This document shows positions 10,322 to 64,000 of a DNA stretch of 64,000 bases, piece by piece. The stretch spans positions 2,418,001-2,482,000 of the forward strand of contig OX337236.1 of the NCBI GenBank assembly GCA_946965045.2. Direction: 5' to 3'. The notes beneath the pieces were generated by a model. It was not told the origin of the DNA. It ran no database searches and saw only the letters and a list, made by a program, of their open reading frames with translations. The DNA comes from Epithemia pelagica. Lineage: Eukaryota > Protista > Bacillariophyta. The position numbers were made by a program, and so were the translations under genes. Numbering within the stretch: the stretch's first letter is position 1; the number at the start of each line of letters is the position of its first letter.

Positions 10322-10625
10322 TCAAGGAACAAGGTACCAAGCGCCCCAGCCATACTGTAAAGCAGTGATCAACATTGAAATAAGCATGTCAGCTTTTAAT
10401 GCCAAAAGTCGGGAAACAAACATATGACGACCACATGGAACTTACTTCTTTCTTTCCAAAGCCGTAGTTCGCCCATGTTGTCTCTGCGTTGCATGGCTTC
10501 TTTGGAACTGTGTTACTTGTTCTCGTAAGGGCTGGATTGGTCGTTGTGGTGGAAGAATTTCTTGCATTTTGTCGACCAAGTGATCGCGCAGTTGTTGATG
10601 CAGCGTTTCGTGAAGATTGAAACAT
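10322..10625 (-). CDS. GWGAWYLVP microprotein, copy 2 (70 aa, 2 exons: 10446-10625, 10322-10354)
   Basis: MFQSSRNAASTTARSLGRQNARNSS...PKKPCNAETTWANYGFGKKE | GTAAGT...TTACAG (91-bp intron) | YGWGAWYLVP*. Confidence 0.85.
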
Positions 10626-42302: not shown

Positions 42303-42642
42303 GCAAAAACTGTTTGTTGTGGCAGCTCGTTCGTTGGTTTGATGCTCTACGAACTACGAAGGCTTGTGCTGGTCGAGAAGAGAGAACAGCAATGTTGGAA
42401 GCCGAGCAAAGACAACGGCTCTACCAACACCTTTGTTGGCAACACAAACCACAACATTCATTGAGTCCAAAACATGAGCTTTCATGGGAAGATCCATCTG
42501 GCCGTGGATTTCCTCCTTTTCCGTCGCGGATCAGTCTCTCCTGACTTCAGGGTCATTAAAAGCGACCCATAAACGACTCATCCATCATTGGCCGTTGAAT
42601 GATGAGAGGTCGACCATTGCAAGACTGGTAGAGACAAACAAG

Positions 42643-44872
42643 ATGATGACCTCGCCGAGGAGAAGAGCCCAGTTACATCATGGAACGTTGCGTTTGATGA
42701 TATCACTCTTCCTACTGATCGGTTGCGTTTGGGGTCAAGTCGTCGGCAAGCAAGGAAACCTGCAGCCATTGCAATCAATATCTCTGCTGGAGCAATCCTC
42801 GTCTTCGGTTCGTGAATCGAAGGATGAAGATGACCGTTCCTTGAATGGAGCGCGAGAACGGTTGCAAAGAGCGATTCTTGAATTGATGAGTCATGGAGGT
42901 TTCGAAGTATGTATGAAAAGCTCCATGGATGAGCATTCACCAACTTTTGGATGGTTTCCTCATCTTGCAAAATGCAATGATACCATGTCGCAACAATCGT
43001 CATCATCAATATCTATCGAGTACAAATCAATAGGACAGGAACAAATGAGTCGATCTCTCCAAGCCTCTTCATGGTGGGAGAAATCGTCGGAGAAAATTCT
43101 CAACGGCTTCTGTGCGTTGATCTGTATATTGATTGCTGCATTGGCCGCTGGATTGACCCTGGGAATGTTGGGACTCGATCCTCTCATGTTGCTCATCAAG
43201 CAGCGTGCGTCCAACGATCCGATTGAGAGAGAGCAAGCGTCCAATCTCTTGCCAATCGTCAAACAGCACCATCGTCTACTTGTGACTCTTTTGCTCATGA
43301 ATGCCGTCGCCAACGAAGCTCTACCTATTTTCCTAGAGGCACTGGTTCCACCCTCGGTAGCTGTCATTTTTTCAGTCGTCTTTGTCTTGTTTTTTGGGGA
43401 GATCATACCGTCAGCTATTTTCACTGGTCCGAACCAAATGGCAATTGCTAGCCGATTGACACCAGTGGTCAAGACGGCCATGTGTCTGTTGCATCCCATT
43501 GCCATGCCCATTTCCAACCTTTTGGATCGGCTGCTTCATGATGAGGATGACGACAGTGGAGCGAACTTTTACAAACGAGGGGAACTCTCGGCATTGATTC
43601 GCATTCAGTATGAAGAACGAATGGCTGCGAAACGCAAGCGAAAGAAAGAGCGCAAACAGCATGCACATTCGTCGACCGTGCAAATGCTACCCGATGATGA
43701 TAACATTGGGGCGCTTAGCTTCTCATCACTCAAGTCATTTCGTGAGGAACACAGGGAATCATTCCGTGCCATCAAGTCACAAATAGACTACATGGACTCA
43801 CAACAGTCTGATCCTCTGGCCGTTTCGTCGTCCTCCTCGCAAAAGGTCAACGGTGGGCCTAGCAAAGCGGAAACCGGGGACGTTGTGAGTACGCGGATTG
43901 TTCGCAGTGACGAATCTTCAGTGCGCACATACGAAGAAGTTGGCATGGTACGCTCCAACAGTATTCACATTGATGAAGTCACAATGGTGGAAGGAGCCTT
44001 GTCGATGAAGGTGAAGGTCGCAATGGACGTACACACCCCATTGAGTCGAGTCTTTAGCATCCCCAACACCACCGTCTTGTCCGAGAAGGGTGTGGTCAAG
44101 ATCTATGCATCCGGATTTTCTAGGATACCCGTGTACCTCGAAGATCTTTCCAATAAACGAAACAAGAAGCAAATTATTGGCATTCTCCTCACGAAGCAAC
44201 TCATTGTTGTGAACCCCGATGATAAGAGGGTGGTGACTTCTATGCCACTCTATACACCACTTTGTGTGACCCCTGAAACACCTTTGGTGGACCTTGTGAA
44301 CATGTTTCAAACGTAAGATCTATGTCATTAAATGTGTGGAAGGAAAATACGGGTGCTAATGTTGAAAACTTGTTGTTTTAACTTTGATAATAACAGTGGC
44401 AGCAAAGGAATGACAGGAGGGCACCTGGCCCTTGTCTGTGCGAGGCCCAGAGAGGGCAACCAGGCACTTGCCTCAGGAGACCCTCTTCCGGAAACGGCAG
44501 GATTAATGGGTATTATCACTCTGGAAGATGTCCTTGAGACTCTTCTCCAGGAACAGATCTTTGACGAAAATGATGTAAGGCTAACTGGCACATGTGTGCA
44601 ACAGACTGTTTGTTAGATGTCTAACAACTATTGTGCTTTTTTCTATTCAGAAATACGAACGGGATGCCCACAAGTTGGCCATGATGGTCCTCCGCCGATG
44701 GAGGCGTTACGTGGCTCTGAAGAAGAAAGGTCTTTTAGAGTCTTCAGCAAGTAGAGCGGGGCACGAGCCAGCACTTCGCCAGGTTGTCAAGGACGCAGTT
44801 GCGGCGCATATAATGGAGGAGGGCCACGCCAATGAGCAAACATCCCTCCTTGTAAATGGCGCCACGCCCTAG
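42643..44872 (+). CDS. CNNM/DUF21 + CBS-pair metal transporter, 3 exons (42643-44312, 44397-44574, 44651-44872)
   Basis: AALAAGLTLGMLGLDP...HHRLLVTLLLMNAVANEALPIFL...FGEIIPSAIF (DUF21); GFSRIPVY, GHLALV, GIITLEDVLETLLQEQIFDEND (CBS pair); GT-AG introns keep the frame. Confidence 0.9.
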
Positions 44873-49133: not shown

Positions 49134-52100
49134 CTAACCATTGGAATGTGGAAGAGTAGTGGAACGGAGAATGACTGGTGCCCAGGTGGCAAGCCAAGCC
49201 TGGAGAGAGGATGAAGTTGTATGAAGTTGGAAATGTTCGTCTGGAGTAGAGTAGAAGACTTGTTGAATCTCAGTGGGGACAGATAAGCGATGAGCATACA
49301 GACAACAAATTTCTCGTTGAGCAAGTACACAGGCAGCAGCTTCTCGAGTGGCAGAATCACGGCCGTGAACATCTTCATTTCGTCGTAGCCAAAGAGAGAA
49401 CGTGTGGGAGAATATAAGTTTGATGGTGCCGGTGACAAAGACCCGGCCAGATATAAAGGAGGAAGAGATCCCGAGGGAGGAGAGATGAAGATCCTGCAAG
49501 GAGGACCAAGTAAGAGCAAACCGTCCAAGAAAAAGCTGGTCCCAGCCAATTAGAGTCTGCTGAGCCACAAGACGGGCCAGGGGTGGTGTCAAGTTATCAA
49601 AGGAAATTGGTGTAGAGTCAAGCCACGAACGAACAGCAGTAGTGAGCAAGTCAATCAACGAAGCATCAACCGACTGTTCCTGCCAGAATGTGTTAAGGTC
49701 GTCGAATAAAGGGCCAATCCACGAACGACGTGAAGGGCATCGGAGAAAATGGTCGCGGTCTTCGCAGATATTGGCATTACAAGATGCACAGGTCTCAACG
49801 TAGTGGTCTGCGTAGCGGGAGATCAGGTCGCCAAGTGGGAGCCAGTTATGGAGATACTTAGACAAAAAGTGGCGTCGCGTATAATTGGCACGTACAGCGC
49901 TGCAATGAGACGTCCAATCAACCAGTTGCCAAGTCTCATGATTCCACCCCTGCTTGCGGCAGATGTGCTCTTGAATTAAGGGTTCATTGTGGCAGCGACG
50001 AAGCACCGCTCGATAATTCGCTGTGATTGTACCTTTCGGACCGTGTAGCAAGGCCACAGTACCTTCGACGAGTGGAACCTTGGTAGGATTAAGAGACGGT
50101 GGAAATGTGTACTGAGAGGCAAGCTCATCCGCTTCGACATTCAATTGTGCAGGAAGAGAGAGTTCATCGAAGGCATGATATCGATCCTGATGTCCTTTCA
50201 CGTGACAGCAATGTGGTATGTCTGAAAATCGACGTATGGTAGAGGTAATCGCTTGATGCAAATCCCAATCCGGACTCATTGTTGTATACGGATAATCGAC
50301 AGTCCATTCTAACCGTTGTTGTATTGTGTCCAGCATACTTTTGGAGTCGGAATAGAAAACCAAGTTGGAGGGTAGTGGACACCCGAAGAATTCGCATAAA
50401 CGAAAGACCAGGCGAAGCCATGCAAGAAAGGCATAACTTTCGGCTCTGTAAGAAGTGGTACGATAGCCTGGTGCAGGCCCCTTCAGATGAATCAGCCGAG
50501 TTCCAGTATCATCAGCGCATGATCCACCAAAAGAACCTGTGAAATCGGCAACAGATCCATCGCCACACAGATGAAGAGGAAAGACATTCGAGGATAGGAG
50601 GGACTCAAATGTATGTCGAAGTGTCTCAATGGGGCATAAAAATTTTGTACCGCAAAGCAAATCGTGTTCCCATGGTTCAAGCGTCGAAACCAATTGTGCA
50701 AACGCGGTTGGTGAGGGACAGGGAGGATCGGGAGGGACTGCCCCGGCCAGTCGAGCCAAAATGTGGACATTGTTGCGTTGCATCGTAAAAGCTGGGAGAG
50801 CGCACGAGGGAAGAATAGTGTACTCTTGAGTAGTGGCAACGAAACCGCGATTGTCCAAGGTCGGAACATGAACACGGAACCGTGTAGTTGAGGGAGACCG
50901 CACAAGGAGTAAACGCTGATCCTGCGATAAGTACGTATTCCATTCTCGGTGTAATGACGCGCCTGTGACGTGCCATTTACCCAATGGTACTTGAAGATCG
51001 CATGCAGTGCCTTGCCGAATAAATGTACGTAGAAACTTTTTCCAGAGCAGCCAGGCCTTGTTTCCAGGACGCTGTTGATAGGGAAAGAGAAGTTTAGGCT
51101 GACTTTGTATAGAGTGATAACCTTGAAGCGCAAATTGACAGATTTGGCGTCCTTCTGGTGTCACCATGTCGCTGAGCAAAGTAATCCCAAGGTACAGTCG
51201 ACAAGCATTGATAAGTTGCAAGTCCGTAGGTCGCTGGAACACCTGGATTGCATGGTCCATGACAAACATATCCGAATCCCGTTGAAGTTTAGGAACAAAG
51301 GAGCTATGGACTTCTATAGTGCACCCCAACTGGTGCAGTGATTCTCGCAGCGGTGGAATCCACACCATCGGATCAAGATGAGGAATAACAGTCGATGTAT
51401 CCATAAGAATCGGTATACTTGTTCCAGCTAACATCTGGCCCCATCCCAACATAATCGTGGCCAGCTGAGAGGCAACGCCATTGGAACGTAGACATGCCAA
51501 TAATCCATATATCTGTGCAATACCCCGTTCAATGGACAAAGTACGGAGTCCGAGACCACCAAAATCCGAATTCCCAAAAACCACAGCGTTTGGAGTATGA
51601 CGGTTATACCCATATTTCGGTAGGAAGACCTTTTTGAGCTCTTTCTGCAGTTGGTCACAGTGTTCGACCGACAGTGATGAAGAAGGAAACACGTAAGTCA
51701 TGCTGGGCAGATAGATGGCATGATAGTATGCCCAGACGTCAGTCCGGGAGAGCGGACTACTAGCGACAACTCGAGCATGCTCTTGATTTTTCTTTCTCAA
51801 TGCCTGGAATTGTGAATTATCCGTAGACGACGGTGCCTTGTGAACACCCAACGTTTTATGACTGTCATACGCGGAAAGTTGTCGAATAGAACTGACAGTC
51901 GTTGCATTGGAAGTGATAGTAATAGTAGGACCGAATCGACCACTCTTGAGAAATGGAAGGCCGTCAATGGTGAAATCGTAATAAAGAAAATGATAAGAGC
52001 ATTTGCGCTGATTGAGAGATCCACCTGATAAGGAAAGGAGATCGTTCCACCGCTGAGCATCTTCTGTTGCTAGTTGAGTATAGTGTTCTGGAGGAGCCGC

Positions 52101-53437
52101 GGCTGGAAGGAGGAAGTCATTCACACTCCCGCTGGTGTCATCAACAAAGCCAATCATCAGAACTTGAGCCATGGTCTTGCGATCAGGGGAATAAAACGTA
52201 GCCCCATGTGCCTTCTCGTCGTACGTTTCGAAGAGAATAGAACTAACGACGCACCAGATTGCTGGGGAGTTCCCAGCGCCTTGTCCTGATCCGTATATCG
52301 GGTAGATTGTGCAGTGTTTGTAAAAACGATCCGAAACGCCCAATTGCGTTTTAAGACAATACCGTGCTTCTTCTAACGTTTTGGCGTTAATGAAGACCAC
52401 TGACCGATGTTGCCCGAAGCTCCGTGATGCTAAGCCGCCAAAAGACATGATGATTCTATCATAACATGCCGTTGCGTCGTAATCAAGGTGTATCATAGGC
52501 CTCTTGCTCGCGCGACTGATCTCATACTGAAACTCTTCTATGAGTGTGGGCAGAACTGCGTCACAACCAGGAACTGCACCAAATTGAGAAGCATGTAGTA
52601 GTTGATGTTTCGCTCCGTGTTGAATGAGCTTTCTCCATTTAACCGCCAAGAGCAGATTGTAGTCTTGCTCATAGAGATGTATTACTCTCAGTCGGTGTAT
52701 CTTGATGTTGGCCGGTTCTTTTAAAATCATGACATTCACTATCTTCTGCCATCTTTCCAGAGAATACTGATGCTTGATAGCACCGTTGAGTAATTTGACT
52801 TGCCACTCGATTAGGTCGTTGCGCTTCCGTTCAAGTTCTTGTGCCTCCTCTGTTTCAGGATCAAGGTCGTGTGCTGCAAGAAGTGCCTTGCTATGAGTGA
52901 GATGAAAACTGCTCGGTGATGTCGTTGTAGTTTCTGGCCATGCTTGTATCTTTCCACACCATTCCTCTATAGAAATCGTATCCTTGATCATATCGGCAGT
53001 AAGCATTGCTGTAGATCATCGAGTTCATTTGACTCCCATTGTCCCTCGAGAATCAGCTCAGCGGTATGGGAAGAGGCTCCCCAGTCCACCCACTCGGAGA
53101 AAGGTTGTTGTGTCGGAAACGTTCCATGAGCTTGGCCAAAATGCTTTTGGTTTCTTTGTAGCAACCGGCTTTCAATTTCTGCCGGGGTATCAATGGTTAT
53201 CCATTCGGTGCATCGTTCATAATCCATGTTTGTGGCATCAGCAGGTACTTCCAGCCTTGTAATTCCCGTCTTTTGAGTACCACGGTACTGTCTAATCTTG
53301 TTAAACATTGCCTTTGTTCGTTCGGCAGCTAGTCTATGTTTGATAGCCTTGACAGTACGCTTGTCACCTTGTGCTTGCGCAGTTTCTAATGCTGTCTGTT
53401 GTTCCTTACGCCGTTTCGTAGCGGCTTCTCTTGTCAT
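49134..53437 (-). mobile_element. 5'-truncated non-LTR retrotransposon with RT + RNase H (Ambal-like), frameshifted
   Basis: RT: KIHRLRVIHLYEQD, DYDATACYDRI, GSGQGAGNSP, GFVDD. RNase H: CGDGS...YRAES...YSDS...HVKGHQD...NVEADELA. CCHC: CASC...DHFLRC. Frameshift near 52990-53006; no endonuclease upstream; TSD and tail not identified. Confidence 0.85.
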
Positions 53438-53499
53438 GTCTTGGATTTTCTTCGTCTAAGGAGGTTTTTTGAAGATAAGTGACTGGAATTCCACCAACA

Positions 53500-53680
53500 G
53501 GCGCGTGACACACACCCAATAGGCGCGTGCAGCACCCCCAGAACACGGATCACGCGCATTTGGCGCGTACGAAGCGCGTGGCGCTCCAGATTGCGCGTGA
53601 ATGCGCGTGAAACGTGTAGACAACGCGTGAAACGTGTTGACACCCGCGTGAGCATGTTTATTGTATGTGGAAACGCGTGC
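53500..53680. repeat. Cluster of about 10 CGCGT(G/A) motifs
   Basis: GCGCGTG/ACGCGTG repeated irregularly every 10-30 bp, mostly in one orientation with one inverted copy (TCACGCGC near 53550). Confidence 0.7.
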
Positions 53681-53984
53681 ACAGAGCCTAACCTTTGCCT
53701 AGATACCTAACTACTAGCTACACATATAACACCTAGTATTCCAGTCGCACGTAAACTCCAAAAGCGACCCACAAATTTCTCCTCCACCACCAAATCACGT
53801 CACAGTGACATACGAAGAACAATGGACACAAAATCACAGAAGAACGCTGAAAATTAGATTTTCCTCACACAACAACCACACAAAAGATATACTCTCCCAC
53901 TTTTGTGATCACTTTTTGACGATAGAGTCATAGAGTGCCTCATCCAACTCACACCAACCCCCAACGCCCCAAAAAACACACAGC

Positions 53985-54047
53985 AGCAGCAACAACAACA
54001 ACAACAACAACACAACAGCAACAACAACAACAACAGCTACAACAAAC
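53985..54047 (+). repeat. (CAA)n microsatellite
   Basis: Imperfect CAA/CAG run. Confidence 0.8.
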
Positions 54048-54297
54048 AGGCGAACACAAAGAGAATCATTTCCTTTTTCAAATTGGAAAGGTGCTAGGTA
54101 AGCCAAGTCGACAAGACAACAGTGAGAGTTCGTTTTGTCGTTTTCCTATATGCCCACTAATCATTTTCTTCTGTTTCCATGAAAACCCAACCATGTGATC
54201 GCTGTTTGGCAACTATTTCTTCCCTCCTATCATCCCACAAGACAATTTTCAACGCTCTGAACGACTGGATTGGTGGTTCTGTTTGAAAAAGGGCGAA

Positions 54298-56285
54298 GAC
54301 ACCAAGTTGGTGCACCCATTTCATTCTCCCATCAATTTCCATCGACCAAAACTGGTTGGATTGCTGGATTGCCGCTGCTTCTTCCCTCCTATTATCCCAG
54401 AAGACCATTTTCAACGATCTGAACGGTCGGATTGGTGAGGATTCTATTGAACAAAGGGCAAAAGACACCAAGTTGGTGCACCCTATTCCTTCACCCCTCC
54501 ATCTCCATCGACCAAGACCCTGTTGGATTGCTGTGTTGCTACCCCTTCTCAATTGGAACAAGGGCCGAGACACCAAGTTGGTGCACCCATTTCCTTCACC
54601 CCTCCATTTCCATCGACCAAGACCCTGTTGGATTGCTGTGTTGCTACTCCTTCTCGATTGGAACAAGGGCCGAGACACCAAGTTGGTGCACCCATTTCCT
54701 TCACCCCTCCATTTCCATCAACCAAGACCCTGTTGGATTGCTGTGTTGCTACTCCTTCCCGATTGGAACAAGGGCTGAGACACCAAGTTGGTGCACCCTC
54801 TTCCTTCACCCCTCCATCTCCATCGACCAAGACCCTGTTGGATTGCTGTGTTGCTACTCCTTCTCGATTGGAACAAGGGCCGAGACACCAAGTTGGTGCA
54901 CCCATTTCCTTCACCCCTCCATTTCCATCAACCAAGACCCTGTTGGATTGCTGTGTTGCTACTCCTTCCCGATTGGAACAAGGGCTGAGACACCAAGTTG
55001 GTGCACCCATTTCCTTCACCCCTCCATTTCCATCGACCAAGACCCCGTTGGATTGCTGTGTTGCTACTCCTTCTTGATTGGAACAAGGGCCTAGACACCA
55101 AGTTGGTGCACCCATTGCCTTCACCCCTCTATTTCCATCGACCAAGACCGTGTTGGATTGCTGTGTTGCTACTCCTTCCCGATTGGAACAAGGGCCAAGA
55201 CACCAAGTTGGTGCACCCATTTCCTTCACCCCTCCATCTCCATCGACCAAGACCGTGTTGGATTGCCGTGTTGCTACTCCTTCCCGATTGGAACAAGGGC
55301 CAAGACACCAAGTTGGTGCACCCATTTCCTTCACCCCTCCATTTCCATCAACCAAGACCCTGTTGGATTGCTGTGTTGCTACTCCTTCCCGATTGGAACA
55401 AGGGCTGAGACACCAAGTTGGTGCACACATTTCCTTCACCCCTCCATTTCCATCGACCAAGACCCTGTTGGATTGCTGTGTTGCTACTCCTTCTCAATTG
55501 GAACAAGGGCCGAGACACCAAGTTGGTGCACCCATTTCCTTCACCCCTCCATTTCCATCGACCAAGACCGTGTTGGATTGCTGTGTTGCTACTCCTTCCT
55601 GATTGGAACAAGGGCTGAGACACCAAGTTGGTGCACCCATTTCCTTCACCCCTCCATCTCCATCGACCAAGACCGTGTTGGATTGCCGTGTTGCTACTCC
55701 TTCTCAATTGGAACAAGGGCTGAGACACCAAGTTGGTGCACCCATTTCCTTCACCCCTCCATCTCCATCGACCAAGACCGTGTTGGATTGCTGTGTTGCT
55801 ACTCCTTCCCGATTGGAACAAGGGCCGAGACACCAAGTTGGTGCACCCATTTCCTTCACCCCTCCATCTCCATCAACCAAGACCCTGTTGGATTGCTGTG
55901 TTGCTACTCCTTCCCGATTGGAACAAGGGCTGAGACACCAAGTTGGTGCACCCAATTTTCACTCCTCCATCTCCACCGACCAAGACCTTGTTGGATTGCT
56001 GTGTTGCTACTCCTTCCCGATTGGAACAAGGGCCGAGACACCAAGTTGGTGCACCCATCTCCATCCCTCCTTCATCTACATCGACCAAGAAGACCCCATT
56101 GGATTGCTATATCTTGATTGGTGGTTCTGTTGAAGGGCCGAGACACCAAGTTGGTGCGCCCCCATACTTCCCTCTTCTATCTCTATCGACCAAGACCCTA
56201 TTGGATTGTTGTATTTGCTACTGATTCTTGACTGGAAGGACCGAGACATCAAGTTGGTACACCCATATCCCTCACTCCTCCATCC
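54298..56285. repeat. Tandem array, 105-bp unit, about 19 copies
   Basis: GACACCAAGTTGGTGCA recurs at exact 105-bp spacing 15 times (54464 to 55934), with diverged copies at 54298, 56037, 56142 and 56245. Each unit carries the palindrome CACCAA-G-TTGGTG. Confidence 0.95.
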
Positions 56286-56418
56286 CTATCGACCAAGACC
56301 CTCCAGGGTTTCCATCACGCAAGCTTGAGAAACGGTAGTATCAAGTTGCATCAGAACCCTGCATCGAAAGAAAATTTCTCCTTGTTTCTTCCCCAAGCTG
56401 ATTGAATCGCACGTTAAT

Positions 56419-59400
56419 ATGGCTGATTCGGTAGAAGATTCCGATCGATATTTCCCAGACTTGATATGTTATGAATATACAATCGAGTGGTATCGTTCTG
56501 TTTATTCCAACACTGATAATTGGACAGATTTCTCCACTACATATGGAGGTGAAACCATATTCGTATCCCTCTTGCGCTGTGGATCAAGTATTTTCAGTGA
56601 TATCGCCTCGCATGCTGCTGTTTGTTTCCCGAAGATACTGAGACTTGTAGAGACGATCGAAGAACAACAAGAGGGAAACAAGAGTGACGGAGCTGGTAGT
56701 TTTATTTCACCAGGAATCGACCTATTCGAACAAACTCTATATGGAGACGCACTTCGTCTGTGGGACAAGGAATTCCCGTCAACGACAAGATCAAAGTCGA
56801 GCGCAAGCTTTACTCGATCCCTCAAGGTGTTTCTTGGAGCCCATCCTATGCTCGCTGATATTGTCCTCAACTCGTATTCGATGGAGAGACGGCTTAATGT
56901 CGTGGCTGCAAAAATATTGGACTACATGACGTCTGATAGATCAAAGTTTCGGAAAGACAGAACAATACCAGTCCGAGAAATGGTTTGGAGCGTTCAACAT
57001 ATGGCAGCTGTCTATCGGGTATTGGAATCTGACTCCTATGAAATGGAAGGAGTCGATGTTGAAAAAGCATTAGCCCTTACACTTCCTGATTGCTGGTTTC
57101 GTCCTTATTTTGACATACCAAGAGCTGCTAAGTATCCCGCGAACGACTATTCCAATTTGGCGGTTCTAATTTCATATTACCAGACGATGGAACGGGAATA
57201 CGCTACAAAGACGAAGGAGTATCAGAAGGGGCGACATGAACAACGATCTCAAGACAGGAAAAGCCGTAAACGAGCGTCAGACAGTAAATGTGATGGTGCA
57301 ACAAGTTCTACCAATTTCACTGTTTCAAATAACGAGAGCAAATCACCATCTCAGTCTCTGTCAGCGACCGAGGAGGATCGGAGTTCCATTTTTGATACTC
57401 TTGCATTGAAAAAGAAACCACAAAAAGGAAAACAAGCGACGACAAAAAAATCTTCCTCTCAATCAAAGGTGGGTCTGTTGGAAAGTAAATCACATGTTGA
57501 CCACGGTAGCGACAAACCTAAAGGAATACCAAAGAAACCACCTCCTCTCAAGAATAAACCTGGTCCATCAGACGACCTTGCATCTTTCACTAACGACCGT
57601 TTGATTCATATGGCTAACTGGTCCCTCAAACAGTCGATGTCAGCGATCAATGAAGCTTGGGATCTCTGTAAAGAAAGTGCCGTTAGACGTAAGGGAAGCA
57701 TCCATGAAGTTGTTTTGCGATTTGTCTTTACCTGTGCTTGCTGTACCAACAAGAATGGTTCTCTACAACATGACAATGGGAAAATGGACGTCCTTTTTGT
57801 CCCACATCGCCAGTACAGACGAAACCTTTTGCTACGGACGAATACTCAAGAGACGACTAAGTTTAAGGGGATCCCTCCCCTCATATTCAGGTCGATGCTT
57901 GTGCTGGTGGTTCATAAATGGCACAACAAGTCCGTTTGCTTTGAGCAAATCGACGAAGATAGTCTGAGAATGGACACAACGACTGCAATGGATTTGAGTT
58001 CGTCGTCTTCCGATACTACATTGGTCGTCGTCACTACCAAGTATGAAGCTTTTGATCCTGTCTTAATCCTCTTACAAGCACATCAAAGAGAAGTGTTGAT
58101 ATTCGATCCATTATTGACAAGGGATATTCGCTCGTGGAGGCCTACAGTGATTCGATGTCTACGGAAACTAAGGCTATTGGACGACGAAAAGAAAATCCAA
58201 TCATTCTTGAGCGTTGATATAAAGGAAGAGCTCATTGGATGTGACTGGAGATTCATTTATAAGAAGTATCCGAATCCGGTGGCACCAAGTGCGTGTACGC
58301 TTCCCCAAGTATCAATCATATGTGTGATCGACGAGATCCTGTCAAAGGCGTCCCCTAATATGTCCTGTGATCAGATGATGGGGAAATGGGCTCAAGAATT
58401 GCCATCGTGTAGGCGAGAATGTCACAAGGCCTGCAATCATATCGTGAGTACGGCTATCAATAAAGCGAAACGTGATTCGACTCTGCGTGTATGTTTCAAG
58501 GACGTTAATGACGATACACGTCCAAGGATCAAACGCAGTCGCCGGTTTATAATGGAAGGGAAAGATCGAGGGGAGGTAATGGAAGATATGCTGGATTCCG
58601 ACGATGAACGATTCGAGGACATTAAAGTGATACAAGAGATTACAGAAGCGGATAAGGCGCTCGAACGACTTCACGAATATCGGCGATTTTTGGATCTAGT
58701 ACGAACATTGAACGATGAAGATCAGAAAGAGGCACTCTGTTCCACTTGTGGGACCTCATTGCTTAAAAAGGATCTGGATAGAAGTCGGACCTTTTCTATC
58801 GTGAGTTGGACAAGGCAAGAAACCTCCAACTGTCCTCATTATCATTGTCCAACATGTACTTTCATCCGGAATTCGGTGAAGAATCGATTTTGTTCCATAT
58901 GCGGTCATAGTCATGCTGAGCTAATACCACACGATCTACATGAGACAGAATTAATCGCGAAGAAAGACAAGACAATCGTCCTAGACGAATATGATGAAGA
59001 CTCCGAACAATATTGTGCCATATGCCATGGACAGCGTCCTAACGACTGTCGGATCGAGAGATGCGGGCACAAGTTTTGTCGGGTGTGTCTTGGTCATGTC
59101 CTTACCACCGAAAAACAAGTTCCTATGGGGAAACAGAAATCGACACCTCCTGAAATGAACGAAAGTTGCCCTTTGTGCAACGGAGATATTGCTTCAATTA
59201 CGTACACCAATGCACATGATGGTTCAGTTGAAGAAGTTGGCGTGTCAAAAGAGGAACATCGTGGTCTCTACAGACCGGTCCCTGTATTTCCAGAGACAGC
59301 ATGGGGTCGTGTACCGTTGGAAACTCTCCGTTTCATGAGTAAAAAACAACAAAAGGAGAAGAATAGGAGAGACCAAACTGAATCTTCTACTGTCACGACC

Positions 59401-59430
59401 AGTAACACAGAAGCGAAAAGGCAAGTCTGA
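56419..59430 (+). CDS. Intronless 1003-aa protein with two C-terminal RING-like zinc fingers and a possible degenerate Ulp1/C48-like region
   Basis: CSTC...CPHYHCPTC...CSICG and C3HC4 CAIC...CGHKFCRVC...CPLC. Central TTLVVVTT...VLILLQAHQREVLIFDPL resembles the Ulp1 strand pattern without a clear catalytic His (weak). Confidence 0.75.
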   Translation: MADSVEDSDRYFPDLICYEYTIEWYRSVYSNTDNWTDFSTTYGGETIFVSLLRCGSSIFSDIASHAAVCFPKILRLVETIEEQQEGNKSDGAGSFISPGIDLFEQTLYGDALRLWDKEFPSTTRSKSSASFTRSLKVFLGAHPMLADIVLNSYSMERRLNVVAAKILDYMTSDRSKFRKDRTIPVREMVWSVQHMAAVYRVLESDSYEMEGVDVEKALALTLPDCWFRPYFDIPRAAKYPANDYSNLAVLISYYQTMEREYATKTKEYQKGRHEQRSQDRKSRKRASDSKCDGATSSTNFTVSNNESKSPSQSLSATEEDRSSIFDTLALKKKPQKGKQATTKKSSSQSKVGLLESKSHVDHGSDKPKGIPKKPPPLKNKPGPSDDLASFTNDRLIHMANWSLKQSMSAINEAWDLCKESAVRRKGSIHEVVLRFVFTCACCTNKNGSLQHDNGKMDVLFVPHRQYRRNLLLRTNTQETTKFKGIPPLIFRSMLVLVVHKWHNKSVCFEQIDEDSLRMDTTTAMDLSSSSSDTTLVVVTTKYEAFDPVLILLQAHQREVLIFDPLLTRDIRSWRPTVIRCLRKLRLLDDEKKIQSFLSVDIKEELIGCDWRFIYKKYPNPVAPSACTLPQVSIICVIDEILSKASPNMSCDQMMGKWAQELPSCRRECHKACNHIVSTAINKAKRDSTLRVCFKDVNDDTRPRIKRSRRFIMEGKDRGEVMEDMLDSDDERFEDIKVIQEITEADKALERLHEYRRFLDLVRTLNDEDQKEALCSTCGTSLLKKDLDRSRTFSIVSWTRQETSNCPHYHCPTCTFIRNSVKNRFCSICGHSHAELIPHDLHETELIAKKDKTIVLDEYDEDSEQYCAICHGQRPNDCRIERCGHKFCRVCLGHVLTTEKQVPMGKQKSTPPEMNESCPLCNGDIASITYTNAHDGSVEEVGVSKEEHRGLYRPVPVFPETAWGRVPLETLRFMSKKQQKEKNRRDQTESSTVTTSNTEAKRQV

Positions 59431-59564
59431 TCTATATTATTAGTACTCTCGATCAAAAGAAGAGACATTCTAGTTTCAGGTATTTGGCATTTCTATCCGC
59501 GTACTAACTATGTCTTTGTACTACAAGAAGTTCGGAAACGACAAGCACACATCCTAGAGCGGAG

Positions 59565-61448
59565 GTGACATCCATAAAGAAGAAACATATTCGTCCCACT
59601 TTCGAAGATATGGCATCGGATCAGACGATTTCGAGACTCACATGTACACAGGAGACCTATGCCAAGTACGAAAAGAAGAAAACGCAACGTATAAGTGAAA
59701 CAGTGGTCGCCATGTTGCATCGCAACGAAAGTGCACACGAAAGAATGTGCTACTTTGTCTTGGACAAGGACATCGATCGAATAAGGATGCTATCGCATCT
59801 ACTGCAGCGTTGCTTTGGAAGTTACGACGATCAAGATTGTTTTGGTTTGTCGTTCGAAAAGGAGATGATACAACGGAAGGTCGATATGAAAGATATCCCG
59901 AGTGTCTTTGCACGTATCCCAGAAATATACAACAAGGCTATGGATGATGTTGTGGAGACAAGAGATGACGTTGTCAGTCATTCGAACATTATACCAGAAT
60001 GTTGTCCTATGATTGTTACTCAAATCCCGGTGTGTCTTGTAACTAAAACGATCCACAATGCATTCATATTGGAATGTACCTTGTCGAGGACAAGATATAG
60101 AGAAATCAGGAAAAAGACAACACATGTGTCGTCCTCTATATTCGAAGATCCTGTCATGATGATTCGGACTAACAAAAATTTATGTCTTGACGAAAATGAT
60201 CACCTCTTCAGAGATATCATTATCCTCTTCCCTTTGGCTGGGGTTTTTTATACATGTGTGCGTCAATTTCAAGAACTATCAAGGTCGTCCAACATCACAT
60301 CGTCATCAGTCCCACTACCGTTGTCTTGGTTACGTCTGCGACACAAAGATGGCCAACCTGCAAGTAATGCATTCTTGAAAAAGATTCATCGTTGTTGGAG
60401 TCTAGATTGGGGTGAACATCTTACTAATAATGACAAAACTGTGAAGGAATGTTACCAATGGTCCGATGTGGAGGATGGGAGCCCACTTTTACCTCCTGAC
60501 GTGTACCTCGATGACAAGGGAAAGATCGAAAAGTCAGGGAATAAACAGTCGATGACACATCACATGTCACGGGAACAATATCGAACAAGGCTGATTATAA
60601 ACAGGAATGACTCAGATAAGAAAGGGAGTCGGAGATATGTTAGTGGTGCTTTGCATCGAAACCTGTGGTTGCAAATGTCGTCCGGTACACACCCAAGGCC
60701 ACTGGTATACGACCATCGTATTCGGGGAAACATTACTTTCATTGTTCGGACACGCCGAAATGATGGGAGACCAGAGTCACTTAGTTACGTTCGAGTGACA
60801 TCCCTGTTACGGAAGGACCAGACGTTGTTGGACCTATTACACCACAGAGCAAGGGAATTTACACGTACTGGGTCTCTGAGAAAGGCGGCCAATGCCAGAT
60901 GTAATAAGGGAGACTTAGGATCTATGACTACTGTTGGTAATACTGCGGCAAGAGGAAACGGTTCTACTTTCGTTTCCGAGAAATTATTTACAAAGGACAA
61001 GACATTATCGATGATACTGCCGAAAATAAGTACAGCGGCAAAAAGGTTCTGTGAACGCGAATATCCTGGGGTGATTCCAACATTCCGGTATCTAGAAGAT
61101 TCAGCTGGCGAAGAAATGCCTAGTGAATTCGGAGGAAGAGTCGGAGGTATGACCTCAGCCATCACCCTGAGTTTGAACCTAATGAACACGACACACTATG
61201 ATGTTCACGATGGTTCTGTTTCATTCGCAATCTGGACAGAGACAATCCCAGGTGACTCCCAAAATTGGTTCTTTGTTTTGCCGAATATTCTTGTGGAGTA
61301 TGATGGTACTACATACCATGGTCTTTGTATACAACTATTTCATGGGGTTTCGGTTCTATGGGATGGACGTGTGATCCGGCATGGAACGTCAATACACACA
61401 CAAAGACAACATACAGATGGGAACATGAAGAACGACACTATTAGTTAG
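59565..61448 (+). CDS. Intronless 627-aa protein with C-terminal TET/JBP-like 2OG-Fe(II) dioxygenase domain
   Basis: GDLGSMTTVG (G-x-M-x3-G), THYDVHD (HxDxxD), WFFVLPN, LFHGVSVLWDG, IRHGTS (distal His). The stop may be slightly premature (TIS*FWAV). Confidence 0.68.
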   Translation: MTSIKKKHIRPTFEDMASDQTISRLTCTQETYAKYEKKKTQRISETVVAMLHRNESAHERMCYFVLDKDIDRIRMLSHLLQRCFGSYDDQDCFGLSFEKEMIQRKVDMKDIPSVFARIPEIYNKAMDDVVETRDDVVSHSNIIPECCPMIVTQIPVCLVTKTIHNAFILECTLSRTRYREIRKKTTHVSSSIFEDPVMMIRTNKNLCLDENDHLFRDIIILFPLAGVFYTCVRQFQELSRSSNITSSSVPLPLSWLRLRHKDGQPASNAFLKKIHRCWSLDWGEHLTNNDKTVKECYQWSDVEDGSPLLPPDVYLDDKGKIEKSGNKQSMTHHMSREQYRTRLIINRNDSDKKGSRRYVSGALHRNLWLQMSSGTHPRPLVYDHRIRGNITFIVRTRRNDGRPESLSYVRVTSLLRKDQTLLDLLHHRAREFTRTGSLRKAANARCNKGDLGSMTTVGNTAARGNGSTFVSEKLFTKDKTLSMILPKISTAAKRFCEREYPGVIPTFRYLEDSAGEEMPSEFGGRVGGMTSAITLSLNLMNTTHYDVHDGSVSFAIWTETIPGDSQNWFFVLPNILVEYDGTTYHGLCIQLFHGVSVLWDGRVIRHGTSIHTQRQHTDGNMKNDTIS

Positions 61449-61735
61449 TTTTGGGCAGTAAGTTCCAGGTCTATGAATGCAACTGTCAACGAAACAAGAG
61501 ATGACCATGGTATAACCAAAACGGTTCAAGGCATTCGTAGCGGAACATTATAAATTCTTTCTGGATGCATTCATCACCAAGGAAAAACAAATTCAAGGAG
61601 CATTCCACGTCTTTTGCTTCTTACGAGCACTCTGGTGTGGTACACCAGCAGCGTGTTTCTTTGGATTTTCTTGCGCTGTGTGATAACATGCAGTAAAAAT
61701 AGGCATATAGTTGCGAAAGGAGCAACCAGGTGATG

Positions 61736-63533
61736 ATGCCTATAATACCCCAAGTGTCTCTACCATTATTTGGAGCGATTCAAGTTATAGAAGGGTGTCT
61801 TTGCACCATGTCCATGGTAATTTGGTACAACGACAACGCCACACCGATATGGTCTACAACAAGACTTTTGGTCCGCGATAGACGAGTTCAGAGCCTATGA
61901 TATCCATACCTATGATACCCCAAGTGTCTCTACCAATATTTGGAGCGATTCAAGTTATAGAAGGGTGTCTTTGCTCCATGTCCATGGAAGTTTGGGACAT
62001 CGACAACGCCACACTGGTATGGTCTACAACAAGACTTTTGGTCTGCGATAGACGAGTTCAGAGCCTATGATATCCATTGCTATGATACACCAAGTGACTC
62101 TACCGAATTTTGGAGCGATTCAAGTTATAGAAGGGTGTCTTTGCTCCATGTCCATGGAAATTTGTTACAACGACAACGCCAGACCGGTATGGTCTACAAC
62201 AAGACTTTTGGTCCGCGTTACACGAGTTCAGAGCCTATGATATCCATGCCTATGATACCCCAAGTGACTCTACCAATATTTGGAGCGATTCAAGTTATAG
62301 AAGGGTGTCTTTGCTCCATGTCCATGGAAGTTTGGGACATCGACAACGCGACACCAGTATGGTTTACAACAAGACTTTTGGTCTGCAATAGACGAGTTCA
62401 GAGCCTATGATATCCATGCCTATGATACCCCAAGTGTCTCTACCATTATTTGGAGCGATTCAAGTTATAGAAGGGTGTCTTTGCACCATGTCGATGGTAA
62501 TTTGGTACAACGACAACGCCACACCGATATGGTCTACAACAAGACTTTTGGTCCGCGATAGACGAGTTCAGAGGCTATTATATCCATACCTATGATACCC
62601 CAAGTGTCTCTACCAATATTTGGAGCGATTCAAGTTATAGAAGGGTGTCTTTGCTCCATGTCCATGGAAGTTTGGGACATCGACAACGCCACACTGGTAT
62701 GGTCTACAACAAGACTTTTGGTCTGCGATACACGAGTTTAGAGCCTATGACGTCCATTGCTATGATACACCAAATGACTCTACCGAAAGTTGGAGCGATT
62801 CAAGTTATAGAAGGGTGTCTTTGCTCCATGTCCATTGAAGTTCGGTACAACGACAACGCCAGACTGGTATGGTCTACAACAAGACTTTTGGTCCGCGATA
62901 GACGAGTTCAGAGCCTATGACATCCATGCCTATGATATCCCAAGTGTCTCTATTGAAATTTGGAGCGATTCAAGTTATAGAAGGATGTCTTTGTTCCATG
63001 TCCATGAAAGTTTGGGACATCGACGACGCCAGACTGGTATGGCCTACAATAAGACTTTTGGTCCGCGATAGACGAGTTCAGAGCCTATGACATTCATGCC
63101 TATGATACTCCAAGTGACTCTACTGAAATTTGGAGCGATTCAAGATATAGAAGGGTGTCTTTGCTCCATGTCCATGGAAGTTTGGGACATTGACAACGCG
63201 ACATTGGTAAAGTCTATAACAAGACTTTTGGTCCATGTTAAACGAGTTCAGAGCATATGACGTCCATTCCTGTGATACCCCAAATGTCTCTACCAAAATT
63301 TGGAGTGATTCAAGTTATAGAAGGGTGTCTTTGCTCCATGTCCATGGAAGTTTGGGACATCGACAACACGACACCGGTATGGTCTACAACAAGACTTTTG
63401 GTCTGCGATACACGAGTAACGAGTCTATGACGTCCATTCCTACGATACCCCAAGTGACTCTACCGAAATTTAGAGCAATTCAAGTTATAGAAGGGTGTCT
63501 TTGCTCCATGTCCATGGAATTTTGGGTCATCGA
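61736..63533. repeat. Tandem array, 170-bp unit, about 11 copies
   Basis: CAAGTTATAGAAGGGTGTCT recurs at 61781, 61951, 62121 ... 63481 (exact 170-bp period); units contain the palindrome CCATG-TC-CATGG. Confidence 0.95.
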
Positions 63534-63545
63534 CGTCTGTTTAAT

Positions 63546-64000
63546 TTAAGTCGCGGTATTCTCTTTGAGGTTCATGATGGCTTGGAAACAGTATCGGAAT
63601 AACACCATGTAATTGAAAAAGGGACCGAAGCAGGTTGATACCAACCATTTTGTCCACTCGACCTCTGTTCCCATGTGTATGAAGGGGCTAGAGAATTGTG
63701 ATGATTCATTGGGGTACCGGAGGTCCTTGTACATCTGTTGAACTGCTTTGACTATGACTACCTGTGTGTATCGGGGTATCCCTCCTACCCCAGAAGTCAA
63801 GTCAGGCCTGTATTGATTCAAGAGTAAGGCTCTTTGAACGATCATACAGAAACGCCACATATGAAATATTTATTGTTGGACTTCCAACAGACCCGAATAC
63901 TGACACATTCTCCATTTGAATTGCATGGTCGGAGGCAACCCTTACATACGATTGGAATATAAGTACATGTGCGATCCACAAGTTTATCATGGAGTTTCCC
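63546..64000 (-). other. Possible 3' end of a Cys-rich gene running off the right edge
   Basis: An open frame from the window edge (...TCTYIPIVCKGCLRPCNSNGEC...FICG) overlaps ORF 63546..63860 in another frame; cannot be resolved here. Confidence 0.25.

Follow-up and report, generated by a model that had tools for sequence, protein, structure and literature searches.

In fungi, genes for TET/JBP-type dioxygenases are carried by Plavaka, Kyakuja/Dileera/Zisupton, EnSpm, hAT, Helitron and other transposons (PF20515, PF18759), a precedent for TET genes on mobile elements that has been accompanied by an anti-silencing hypothesis (Kojima 2025, PMC12730594). In the TET family itself, an Asp or Asn three residues past the Asp of the HxD motif reads the N4 of cytosine (TET2 N1387, NgTET1 D234, CMD1 D350; PMC7854593, PMC11040006). 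The characterised enzymes differ in their co-substrates. TET2, NgTET1 and CcTet anchor 2OG with an Arg that is followed by an aromatic residue at +6 (Rx5a; R1896/Y1902, R289/F295 and R385/F391, respectively), and the CcTet Arg has been described as "highly conserved throughout the superfamily", with the R385A mutant dead. CMD1 of Chlamydomonas reinhardtii (PDB 7CY4-7CY8), on the other hand, is an ascorbate-dependent 5mC glyceryl transferase, whose ascorbate-binding residues R244, H249, T337, W358 and T399 are each essential by mutagenesis. An Arg toward the N terminus, TET2 R1261 or CMD1 R244, contacts both the co-substrate and the flipped base.

Diatom transposons are methylated, and we know of no characterised diatom enzyme that removes or rewrites 5mC. 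Reviews disagree on whether diatoms have TET homologues at all. The locus described here lies in a stretch of 64,000 nucleotides (the window) from the diatom Epithemia pelagica, where we consider it probable that positions 59610 to 61553 encode a very divergent TET/JBP Fe(II) dioxygenase with a remodelled pocket, carried as the cargo of a transposon and truncated in this particular copy. What is new here is the TET-like gene as transposon cargo, together with an Arg-less variant of transposon-encoded TET/JBP enzymes.

A divergent TET/JBP-type dioxygenase

An open reading frame occupies 59565 to 61448 of the plus strand, within which the gene likely starts at the ATG at 59610, the start used in other copies, although similarity to P0003 continues 5' of this codon; residues are numbered from this ATG as residue 1. 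The features of the gene are as follows.

59610-61553, plus strand: TET/JBP-like dioxygenase gene, 647 codons in intact copies, interrupted at codon 613 in the window copy
60867-61445, plus strand: catalytic DSBH domain of the window copy, residues 420-612 (alignment A1, column frequencies and AF2 domain model)
60897-60899, plus strand: R430, within the catalytic domain
60918-60938, plus strand: GxMxxxG motif, G437-S-M439-T-T-V-G443
61194-61211, plus strand: HxDxxD motif, H529-Y-D531-V-H-D534
61233-61235, plus strand: W542, within the catalytic domain
61380-61382, plus strand: distal H591, in RHGTS, exactly 62 residues after H529
61446-61448, plus strand: TAG at codon 613, specific to this copy and Trp in other copies

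An earlier sequence-only reading of this DNA had proposed a TET/JBP-like dioxygenase from a GxMxxxG motif, the HYDVHD sequence and a His 62 residues further on, and all three are found in the window copy and kept throughout the family. Across about 215-232 family sequences, the glycines and methionine of the first motif are nearly invariant (G437 97%, M439 99%, G443 98%), as are the members of the metal triad (H529 98%, D531 96%, H591 99%), each of which the window copy retains. Judged from the aligned family, these motifs are not chance. The likeness to the Naegleria TET1-type HxDxxD that the same reading had drawn also stands, as D534, 98% conserved, falls by spacing at the cytosine-reading Asp/Asn position and matches both NgTET1 D234 and CMD1 D350.

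The proposed fold is borne out by structure prediction. AF2 models of the domain (pLDDT 87, pTM 0.82) and of the full-length protein (pLDDT 80, pTM 0.85) were compared with the PDB by Foldseek, a check that the earlier reading had suggested, and TET-family structures were the best matches. For the domain, TET2 (E 2e-6, TMq 0.54) was accompanied by CMD1 (0.54), CcTet (0.51) and NgTET1 (0.49), with AlkB at 0.34-0.37 in the same comparison; for the full-length model, the best 24 matches were all of the TET family (TET2 1e-10, CMD1 2e-9). AlkB, FTO and DAOCS ranked behind TET structures, and the best named matches in BFVD were JBP1/TET oxygenase domains. Like TET2, NgTET1 and CcTet, which give the best Foldseek E-values, the protein combines a DSBH with an N-terminal extension and shares the HxD...H triad, an Asp/Asn at His+5 and an HG motif before strand VII. 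Unlike TET2, the family has no Cys-rich domain and instead possesses a conserved N-terminal region of 290 residues (130-420) that lies partly inside the structural alignments.

Sequence comparison is much less forthcoming. The window protein gave no match to Pfam at E<=1, PF12851 (Tet_JBP) and PF20515 included, and phmmer and hmmsearch of PDB sequences with the domain, alignments A1 and A3 and the P0123 domain returned nothing relevant; matches to RPAP2 and 2S-albumin from the PDB and profile searches were set aside as chance. The suggested profile search thus failed for the window protein itself and succeeded for a relative, since against PF20515 (Tet-like 2OG-FeII_Oxy_6), whose cut-off is 27 bits, the domain of P0123 reaches 29.7 bits; this family member is linked to P0001 by a match of E 1e-20. 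PF20515 was matched at E<1 by one of 41 and six of 50 family members, and PF12851 by a single member, weakly (E 0.22). The TET/JBP membership of the window protein depends on its predicted structure and one transitive sequence link, and by that structure the gene is a real, very divergent TET/JBP-type DSBH dioxygenase.

The family is large, comprising 619 clusters at 50% identity, and no Pfam annotation is found among its listed matches, of which the only named relatives are hypothetical proteins of the diatom Fragilaria crotonensis. It is invisible to standard annotation and would escape surveys of epigenetic toolkits. Searches of IMG/VR viral contigs and of genomes of bacteria and archaea yielded no relatives, which leaves a recent origin from viruses or prokaryotes unsupported.

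The co-substrate pocket

The sequence-only reading had seen no clear Arg-bearing strand after the distal His, and this absence proves to be a property of the family. In alignment columns 604-617, Arg never exceeds 10% among the listed residues and Lys is never listed; G612, the best-conserved of these columns, is 92% Gly and 0% Arg in about 215 sequences, and the same family alignment has no conserved Arg or Lys C-terminal to the distal His. Residue equivalences to CMD1, TET2, NgTET1 and CcTet are drawn by spacing from the metal ligands, and depending on the register against the solved TETs, the counterpart of the Arg is N608 or G612, neither of which is basic. From the alignment, the 2OG-anchoring Arg of strand VIII is missing from the whole family and not merely from the window copy, unlike TET2, NgTET1 and CcTet with their R1896, R289 and R385, the last of which CcTet needs. 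At His+13, where those three enzymes have Val or Leu, the family has a Trp (W542, 88% conserved), as does the ascorbate-using CMD1 (W358). Because the distal carboxylate would find no basic residue to anchor it and a Trp occupies His+13, canonical 2OG binding by this family is judged unlikely.

The family could still consist of conventional 2OG-dependent 5mC oxidases, producing 5hmC, 5fC and 5caC, in which substitute residues hold the distal carboxylate of 2OG, and we regard this as a serious reading, with somewhat worse than an even chance of being correct. Among characterised TET/JBP enzymes all use 2OG, CMD1 excepted; CcTet, too, has accessory contacts from a Thr and a Tyr; and R430, which lies 99 residues N-terminal to H529 and is likened by spacing to TET2 R1261 and CMD1 R244 (101 residues before H345), is 94% conserved. 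The carboxylate might be held by K618 or R620 past strand VIII (K618 60%, R/K620 62%), by hydrogen bonds from N526 and N608 (97% and 77% Asn, both polar and close to the expected pocket), or by K/R575 (75%). No candidate basic residue, however, is more than 75% conserved, and in the protein of the window element positions 618 and 575 are Ser and Gln (S618, Q575). In every 2OG oxygenase known to us, the distal carboxylate is bound by a conserved Arg or Lys. W542, moreover, has the same spacing as CMD1 W358, a residue that blocks 2OG sterically, and 5hmC has been reported as undetected in diatom DNA (PMC9033121).

The same Trp leads to a more tentative possibility, an enzyme like CMD1 that would use ascorbate or another non-2OG co-substrate and add a carbon fragment to 5mC (a 5gmC-like product) with no hydroxylation. 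CMD1, which ranks with the closest structural matches, shares the HxDxxD motif and an Arg about 100 residues ahead of it, and agrees with the family by spacing at W542 (His+13, W358), S521 (His-8, T337), F555 (His+26, F371) and T593 (distal His+2, T399; 90% conserved, and Thr in TET2 as well). D534 in turn matches D350, and the disappearance of the strand-VIII Arg from the whole family is a further point for this reading. By spacing, the ascorbate residues R244, T337, W358 and T399 have counterparts in R430, S521, W542 and T593, but H249 is replaced by D435 (a column 87% Asp) and S335 by a variable or Asp column, and only four to five of about ten ascorbate-contact positions match, through equivalences that derive from spacing and not from structural alignment. 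CMD1 itself still has the Arg of strand VIII (R410, which points away) and the aromatic F416, so loss of the Arg is no CMD1 signature; the family has Gly or Asn in its place, and one of the two registers leaves position Arg+6 without a conserved aromatic. There is no HMMER-level similarity between CMD1 and the family, and the Foldseek score of TET2 is slightly above that of CMD1.

For a divergent TET/JBP dioxygenase with a remodelled pocket, a CMD1-like alternative co-substrate and an unconventional mode of 2OG binding would, all told, be about equally likely. A broader proposal, that an Arg-less, Trp-plugged TET clade borne by Plavaka-like elements in diatoms and other marine protists uses ascorbate or another non-2OG co-substrate to leave a new, 5gmC-like cytosine adduct on transposon DNA, and not 5hmC, is speculative and in our estimation doubtful. 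If true, it would explain why 5hmC goes undetected in diatoms despite abundant TET-like genes, and transposons would have gained a chemically distinct route past 5mC silencing. Loss of the Arg and a CMD1-like Trp in the pocket make the family a candidate for a second non-2OG TET chemistry.

Activity on a different substrate, namely thymine (JBP-like synthesis of 5hmU), 6mA or RNA, seems unlikely. The thymine hydroxylases of kinetoplastids and dinoflagellates do belong to TET/JBP, CcTet acts on 6mA too, and fusions to DEAD-box helicases occur in part of the family; yet D534 sits where an Asp or Asn reads cytosine N4 in TET2, NgTET1 and CMD1, thymine was disfavoured with Asp at this position when modelled in the CMD1 paper, 6mA needs a Gly there (compare CcTet G331), and the dinoflagellate thymine hydroxylases retain the H...R motif.

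Under our preferred reading, the enzyme would flip 5mC out of the DNA and use Fe(II) and O2 to modify the methyl group of the flipped base; by analogy with the TET-carrying transposons of fungi, this modification may let the element escape silencing by host cytosine methylation.

A large, probably Plavaka-like transposon as carrier

The TET-like gene lies within an element of which the window holds the left part.

53453-64000, plus strand: left 10.5 kb of a DNA transposon, sharing its start with four other insertions
53453-53461, plus strand: left terminal inverted repeat, CGTCTAAGG, 9 bp
54463-56302, no strand: 105-bp satellite array, 17.6 copies (TRF), present in all element copies
56419-59430, plus strand: 1003-aa ORF with a C-terminal RING finger (weak Pfam RING matches), upstream of the TET-like gene
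58738-58902, plus strand: second Cys/His finger of the 1003-aa ORF
59014-59178, plus strand: RING finger of the 1003-aa ORF
61736-63534, no strand: 170-bp satellite array, 10.6 copies (TRF), much longer in other copies
63549-64000, minus strand: C-terminal part of a 411/423-aa ORF (tblastn, 96-100% identity to the ORF of element copy L059), cut by the window end

Five insertions, that of the window included, begin at the same first nucleotide after unrelated left flanks, and the other four (L001, L055, L056 and L057) are 97-99% identical to the window from exactly 53453 on. The possibility that L001 is the other allele of the window locus was considered and rejected; its left flank is unrelated, as are those of all five copies, and the 90% cluster is spread over many contigs, so L001 is a separate insertion. 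Right ends were located in three copies (L058, L059 and L060), which end at the same nucleotide, again next to unrelated flanks, and measure 22.1, 23.7 and 25.3 kb. Their right terminus (...CCTTAGACG) agrees with the left repeat at nine of nine positions, an agreement with a chance of about 4e-6, and the dinucleotides flanking the three insertions (TA/TA, CA/CA and TG/CA) match in two, making a 2-bp target-site duplication probable. Because the window ends inside the element, the transposase and right end fall outside it, and a search of 52500-64000, which does not include the right terminus, found no inverted repeats.

Following the left repeat at 53453, the element consists of the 105-bp satellite, the RING-finger ORF, the TET-like gene, the 170-bp satellite and the 411/423-aa ORF, and continues past the window with a Plavaka-like ORF of about 1300 aa, small ORFs and the right repeat. 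The large ORF of this element has no direct match to a Plavaka or other transposase family in Pfam. Its homologues adjoin TET-like genes in the diverged element L004 and in the metagenome loci L017, L024 and L010, and those of L017 and L024 (tblastn E about 1e-15 against the large ORF) match PF18759 Plavaka at E 1.9e-8; D217, D324, a CxC and E523 are invariant among the three sequences of alignment A4. Through its relatives, the large ORF is probably a Plavaka-like DDE transposase. Transposons are not the only setting of the TET-like family, since on longer metagenome contigs no transposase could be detected in the vicinity of many of its members.

The 1003-aa ORF has homologues on the same strand, likewise upstream, in two diverged elements, L003 (23% identity, E 2e-41) and L004, and a scan of 363 kb found the RING pattern in those upstream ORFs only; by this arrangement, the RING-finger ORF accompanies the TET-like gene as a conserved partner on its upstream side. 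Clustered at 90%, the ORF has 17 members, and seven of the 15 listed are on contigs that also carry a TET-like copy. Beyond the RING, protein database searches returned only the ORF's own copies, and the PDB gave only weak RING matches. The 411/423-aa ORF, which shows a frame change near 63860 in the window, has homologues in the diverged elements L003, L004 and L005. Neither this ORF nor those of 305, 203-213 and 188 aa match Pfam or the PDB.

About 20 copies of the TET-like gene are at least 90% identical, many of them truncated, and six of the 15 copies listed elsewhere in the genome are full length. Pooled over five copies, dN/dS amounts to 0.19 for the whole gene and falls to 0.05 within the catalytic core, with differences mostly synonymous, a pattern by which the gene is under purifying selection. 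That low ratio, the divergent paralogues in the same genome (32-48% identity), the many metagenome relatives with no transposase nearby and the lack of a direct Pfam transposase match for the element's large ORF could be taken to indicate genes of the host, domesticated as epigenetic regulators, that happen to lie in a repeat-rich region with segmental duplications, but this is quite improbable given five copies with one start nucleotide and unrelated left flanks, three with a common end nucleotide and a 9-bp inverted repeat, matching 2-bp flanks in two of three, three further loci linking Plavaka-related ORFs to TET-like genes, and the number of near-identical, often truncated copies. As the insertions indicate, the TET-like gene travels as cargo on a DNA transposon of 22-25 kb that exists in many copies, and is not a single host "demethylase" locus.

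This arrangement resembles the fungal systems in that a TET/JBP-type gene is found within a DNA transposon whose DDE transposase is probably of Plavaka type, whose terminal repeats are short and whose target duplication is probably 2 bp (Plavaka makes 2-3 bp), present in many copies of which part are decayed, and in that one family member exceeds the PF20515 cut-off. It differs in its host, which is no fungus, the only named relatives coming from a diatom; in its termini, CGTCTAAGG as opposed to the TGT..ACA or CATCA..TGATG of published Plavaka; and in its very large size, with two satellite arrays inside it and a conserved partner gene for a RING-finger protein. The diatom dioxygenase also has HxD and so is not of the HxE "PE type". 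Since part of the TET-like family resides on DNA transposons that resemble Plavaka, the association of TET genes with transposons known in fungi would extend to a distant eukaryotic lineage, a finding that supports the idea that transposons bring base-modifying enzymes to evade methylation silencing.

Decay of the window copy

The suspicion that the last strand of this copy is clipped was well founded. Codon 613 is Trp in nine of nine other copies of at least 90% identity that keep the region, the comparison of paralogues that had been called for, and with the change to TAG the protein loses the greater part of strand VIII (residues 610-615 of the model) as well as the C-terminal helix (619-632); the window copy is most likely non-functional. 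As had also been noticed, the frame runs on past the stop, for 34 further open codons (FWAVSSRS...GTL) to a TAA at 61551-61553. The suggestion that the copy may be decaying stands, and since the gene is multi-copy transposon cargo, the lesion represents ordinary decay of a single transposon copy. H609D was considered as a second lesion and rejected, Asp being the majority state among the element's copies.

Copies, ends and gene order of the element

The TET-like gene is transposon cargo, one truncated copy among about twenty, and this is the main correction to the sequence-only reading of the locus. Its protein belongs to a 90%-identity cluster of 23 members, of which 15 are listed on 14 different contigs, and the 1003-aa ORF upstream belongs to a cluster of 17, with 7 of the 15 listed members sharing a contig with a TET-like copy. 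One assembly (ENA ERZ21939226) supplied four DNA copies, on contigs ctg1293l, 1319l, 1346l and 1362l. Their alignment with the window (97-99% identity) begins precisely at position 53453 (CGTCTAAGGAGG...), to the left of which the flanks are mutually unrelated in all five copies. Walking downstream recovered the right end in three copies (...CCTTAGACG), which matches the left end as an inverted repeat over 9 bp without a mismatch. Element lengths come to 22.1, 23.7 and 25.3 kb, and the dinucleotides flanking the insertions (TA/TA, CA/CA and TG/CA) suggest a 2-bp target duplication. The gene order is as follows.

Left part: left repeat, 1 kb of unique sequence, 105-bp satellite, RING-finger ORF (+)
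Middle: TET-like gene (+), 170-bp satellite of variable length, 411/423-aa ORF (-)
Right part: ORF of roughly 1300 aa (-), three small ORFs, right repeat

The satellite arrays at 54463-56302 (105-bp unit) and 61736-63534 (170-bp unit) are internal transposon parts, and the long ORFs spanning both are probably spurious. The 170-bp array occupies 1.8 kb in the window copy and several kb in others, which accounts for the 22-25 kb range in element size. The 411/423-aa ORF, with no detectable homology to known families, shows a frame change near 63860 relative to the copy at locus L059 in its window portion (63549-64000, (-)), and this may be a second lesion of the window insertion.

The 1300-aa ORF has a homologue (44-63% identity, same layout) beside a diverged TET-like gene at L004 in the same genome, and three metagenome contigs, L010, L017 and L024, carry others next to TET-like genes (E about 1e-15 at 22-29% identity). 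Those of L017 and L024 match Pfam PF18759, 'Plavaka transposase' (E 1.9e-8), and a D...D...CxC...E pattern is invariant in the alignment with them. Fungal Plavaka elements, whose target duplications are 2-3 bp, and other fungal DNA transposons carry TET/JBP genes, a cargo proposed to aid escape from methylation-based silencing (PMC12730594). The gene is best filed with these fungal transposon-encoded enzymes, in a new host lineage; the literature searched gave no report of transposon-borne TET/JBP in non-fungal hosts and none of a characterised diatom TET enzyme.

The RING-finger ORF (56419-59430) is conserved as a partner of the TET-like gene, even between element subfamilies sharing only 23% identity. 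In L003 and L004, both diverged elements, homologues or RING fingers directly precede the TET-like gene in the same orientation, and the 363 kb scanned contain no further instance of the RING pattern. Its N-terminal part of roughly 640 residues has no recognisable domain, and candidate roles are E3 ligase or transposon accessory protein.

Copia-type retrotransposon ORFs (RVT_2, gag-pre-integrase) and an RVT_1-like ORF lie within 3138-7928, 16985-19762 and 49134-53006. The last of these regions, with the RVT_1-like ORF, borders the transposon on its left, so the insertion lies in a repeat-rich stretch. Apparent host genes at 32209-34980, 39786-42302 (-) and 42484-44316 are a DHX29-like DEAD/DEAH helicase, a PD-(D/E)XK nuclease-domain protein and a CNNM-domain membrane protein.

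State of the window copy

The ORF at 59565..61448 (+) is present, with all three motifs read in it (GxMx3G, HxDxxD and distal His). Other copies start at an ATG at 59610 (MASDQ...), from which residues are therefore numbered.

Window protein: G437-x-M439-x3-G443
61194-61211 (+): H529-Y-D531-V-H-D534
Window protein: distal H591, in RHGTS, 62 residues after H529
61446-61448 (+): TAG interrupting the frame, 34 open codons before an in-frame TAA at 61551

At 59520-59609, homology to the paralogue P0003 reaches upstream of that ATG (RRRHRPTTKDIASD vs KKKHIRPTFEDMASD), so that the real coding 5' end may differ from the called start. Codon 613 is Trp in 9/9 listed members that retain the C-terminus; comparison of copies thus settles that the TAG at 61446 is private to the window copy. 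As suspected, the last strand is clipped: the TAG deletes most of strand VIII, together with a C-terminal helix (619-632) that is predicted with good confidence; the family conserves both. The product is probably inactive. Six of the 15 listed members are full-length (647 or 662 aa), the rest being truncated. Across five copies pairwise dN/dS is 0.13-0.28 (pooled 0.19), falling to 0.05 in the catalytic core (48 synonymous vs 8 non-synonymous pairwise differences). The suspicion of decay therefore holds for the window copy, truncated as it is, but not for the element's TET-like genes as a whole.

Fold and family

Checks by HMMER against Tet_JBP and by Foldseek had been proposed. Neither the Tet_JBP profile nor PDB sequences gave a match of useful E to the window protein or family profiles. 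The AlphaFold model of the C-terminal domain (pLDDT 87, pTM 0.82) is a DSBH, matched best in the PDB by TET2 (E 2e-6, TMq 0.54), CMD1 (0.54), CcTet (0.51) and NgTET1 (0.49), AlkB reaching only 0.34-0.37. With the full-length model (pLDDT 80, pTM 0.85) the first 24 Foldseek matches are all TET-family structures (TET2 1e-10, CMD1 2e-9), and the alignments extend to about 370 columns, which places part of the conserved N-terminal region within the TET-type catalytic unit. The named best matches among viral predicted structures are 'JBP1/TET oxygenase domain' proteins. As modelled, the structure settles the fold as DSBH. P0123, a 1607-aa DEAD-box helicase fusion (E 1e-20 to the intact copy P0001), has a dioxygenase domain that scores 29.7 bits against PF20515 (Tet-like 2OG-FeII_Oxy_6; cut-off 27), a profile matched at E<1 by 6/50 further family members. 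The TET/JBP assignment is thus supported by predicted structure and this one transitive profile link.

A phmmer search with P0001 against 1.84 billion cluster representatives returned 619 proteins at E<=1e-3, 50 of them at E<=1e-30. Indexed searches listed 89 matches, none of them with a TET-type Pfam annotation: 88 lack Pfam domains altogether and one has the unrelated PF15716. Names are attached to only two members, both hypothetical proteins of Fragilaria crotonensis. Pattern scans found relatives at 49 metagenome loci and none among viral contigs or prokaryotic genomes. Conservation across the catalytic core is strong, in column frequencies over about 215-232 aligned sequences.

N-terminal side: R430 94%, G437 97%, M439 99%, G443 98%
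HxDxxD region: S521 95%, N526 97%, H529 98%, D531 96%, D534 98%
After HxDxxD: W542 88%, E544 92%, W553 97%, F555 90%, P558 99%
Distal-His region: G579 98%, W584-D-G-R587 91-98%, R590 90%, H591 99%, T593 90%

Active site and co-substrate pocket

In solved TETs the iron ligands are HxD...H, and the His+5 residue (TET2 N1387, NgTET1 D234, CMD1 D350) reads N4 of cytosine (PMC7854593, PMC11040006); CcTet has Gly there and accepts 6mA too. The two 2OG carboxylates are held by an N-terminal Arg (TET2 R1261, CMD1 R244) and the strand-VIII Arg (R1896 in TET2, R289 in NgTET1, R385 in CcTet, R410 in CMD1). The family retains D534 and R430. Strand VIII, residues 610-615 in the model, has no basic residue family-wide: in the regional consensus, N608-H-V-Y-G612-T-F614-x-A-A-K618-x-R620, the G612 column is 92% Gly and 0% Arg, and over columns 604 to 617 Arg never exceeds 10% among the listed residues and Lys is never listed (about 215-232 sequences). 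The missing Arg strand noticed in the window is, by these frequencies, real and family-wide. Two registers are possible, one with N608 at the Arg position and F614 as the stacking aromatic, the other with G612 at the Arg position and R620 as CMD1 R418; distal His-to-Gly spacing is 13-15 in the shortest members, and His-to-Arg is 13 in CMD1 and 15 in TET2. Under either register the canonical 2OG anchor is missing.

The co-substrate pocket is remodelled. The His+13 residue contacts co-substrate in CcTet (L339), is Val in TET2, and in CMD1 is W358, which occupies the Arg side-chain space and keeps 2OG out. The family has W542 (88% Trp, 6% Phe) at the spacing of W358, and by spacing S521, F555 and T593 correspond to the CMD1 ascorbate contacts T337, F371 and T399; unlike CMD1, it has D435 in place of the ascorbate contact H249. 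Because of the His+13 Trp and these further contacts, we infer that a non-canonical co-substrate is a serious possibility.

Among diverged relatives, L002, a paralogue locus of the same assembly, has convergent TET-like genes (10373-11746 (+) and 18361-20031 (-)) about 6.6 kb apart, with neither RING partner nor transposase detected. P0115 and P0123, from other sources, have a DEAD/Helicase_C helicase fused N-terminal to the TET-like domain, which suggests a nucleic-acid remodelling context. In P0005 (L003 10001-12862, a diverged copy) the ORF runs on into a downstream tandem repeat, giving a low-complexity tail of 580 residues with PPKDSEQAT repeats.
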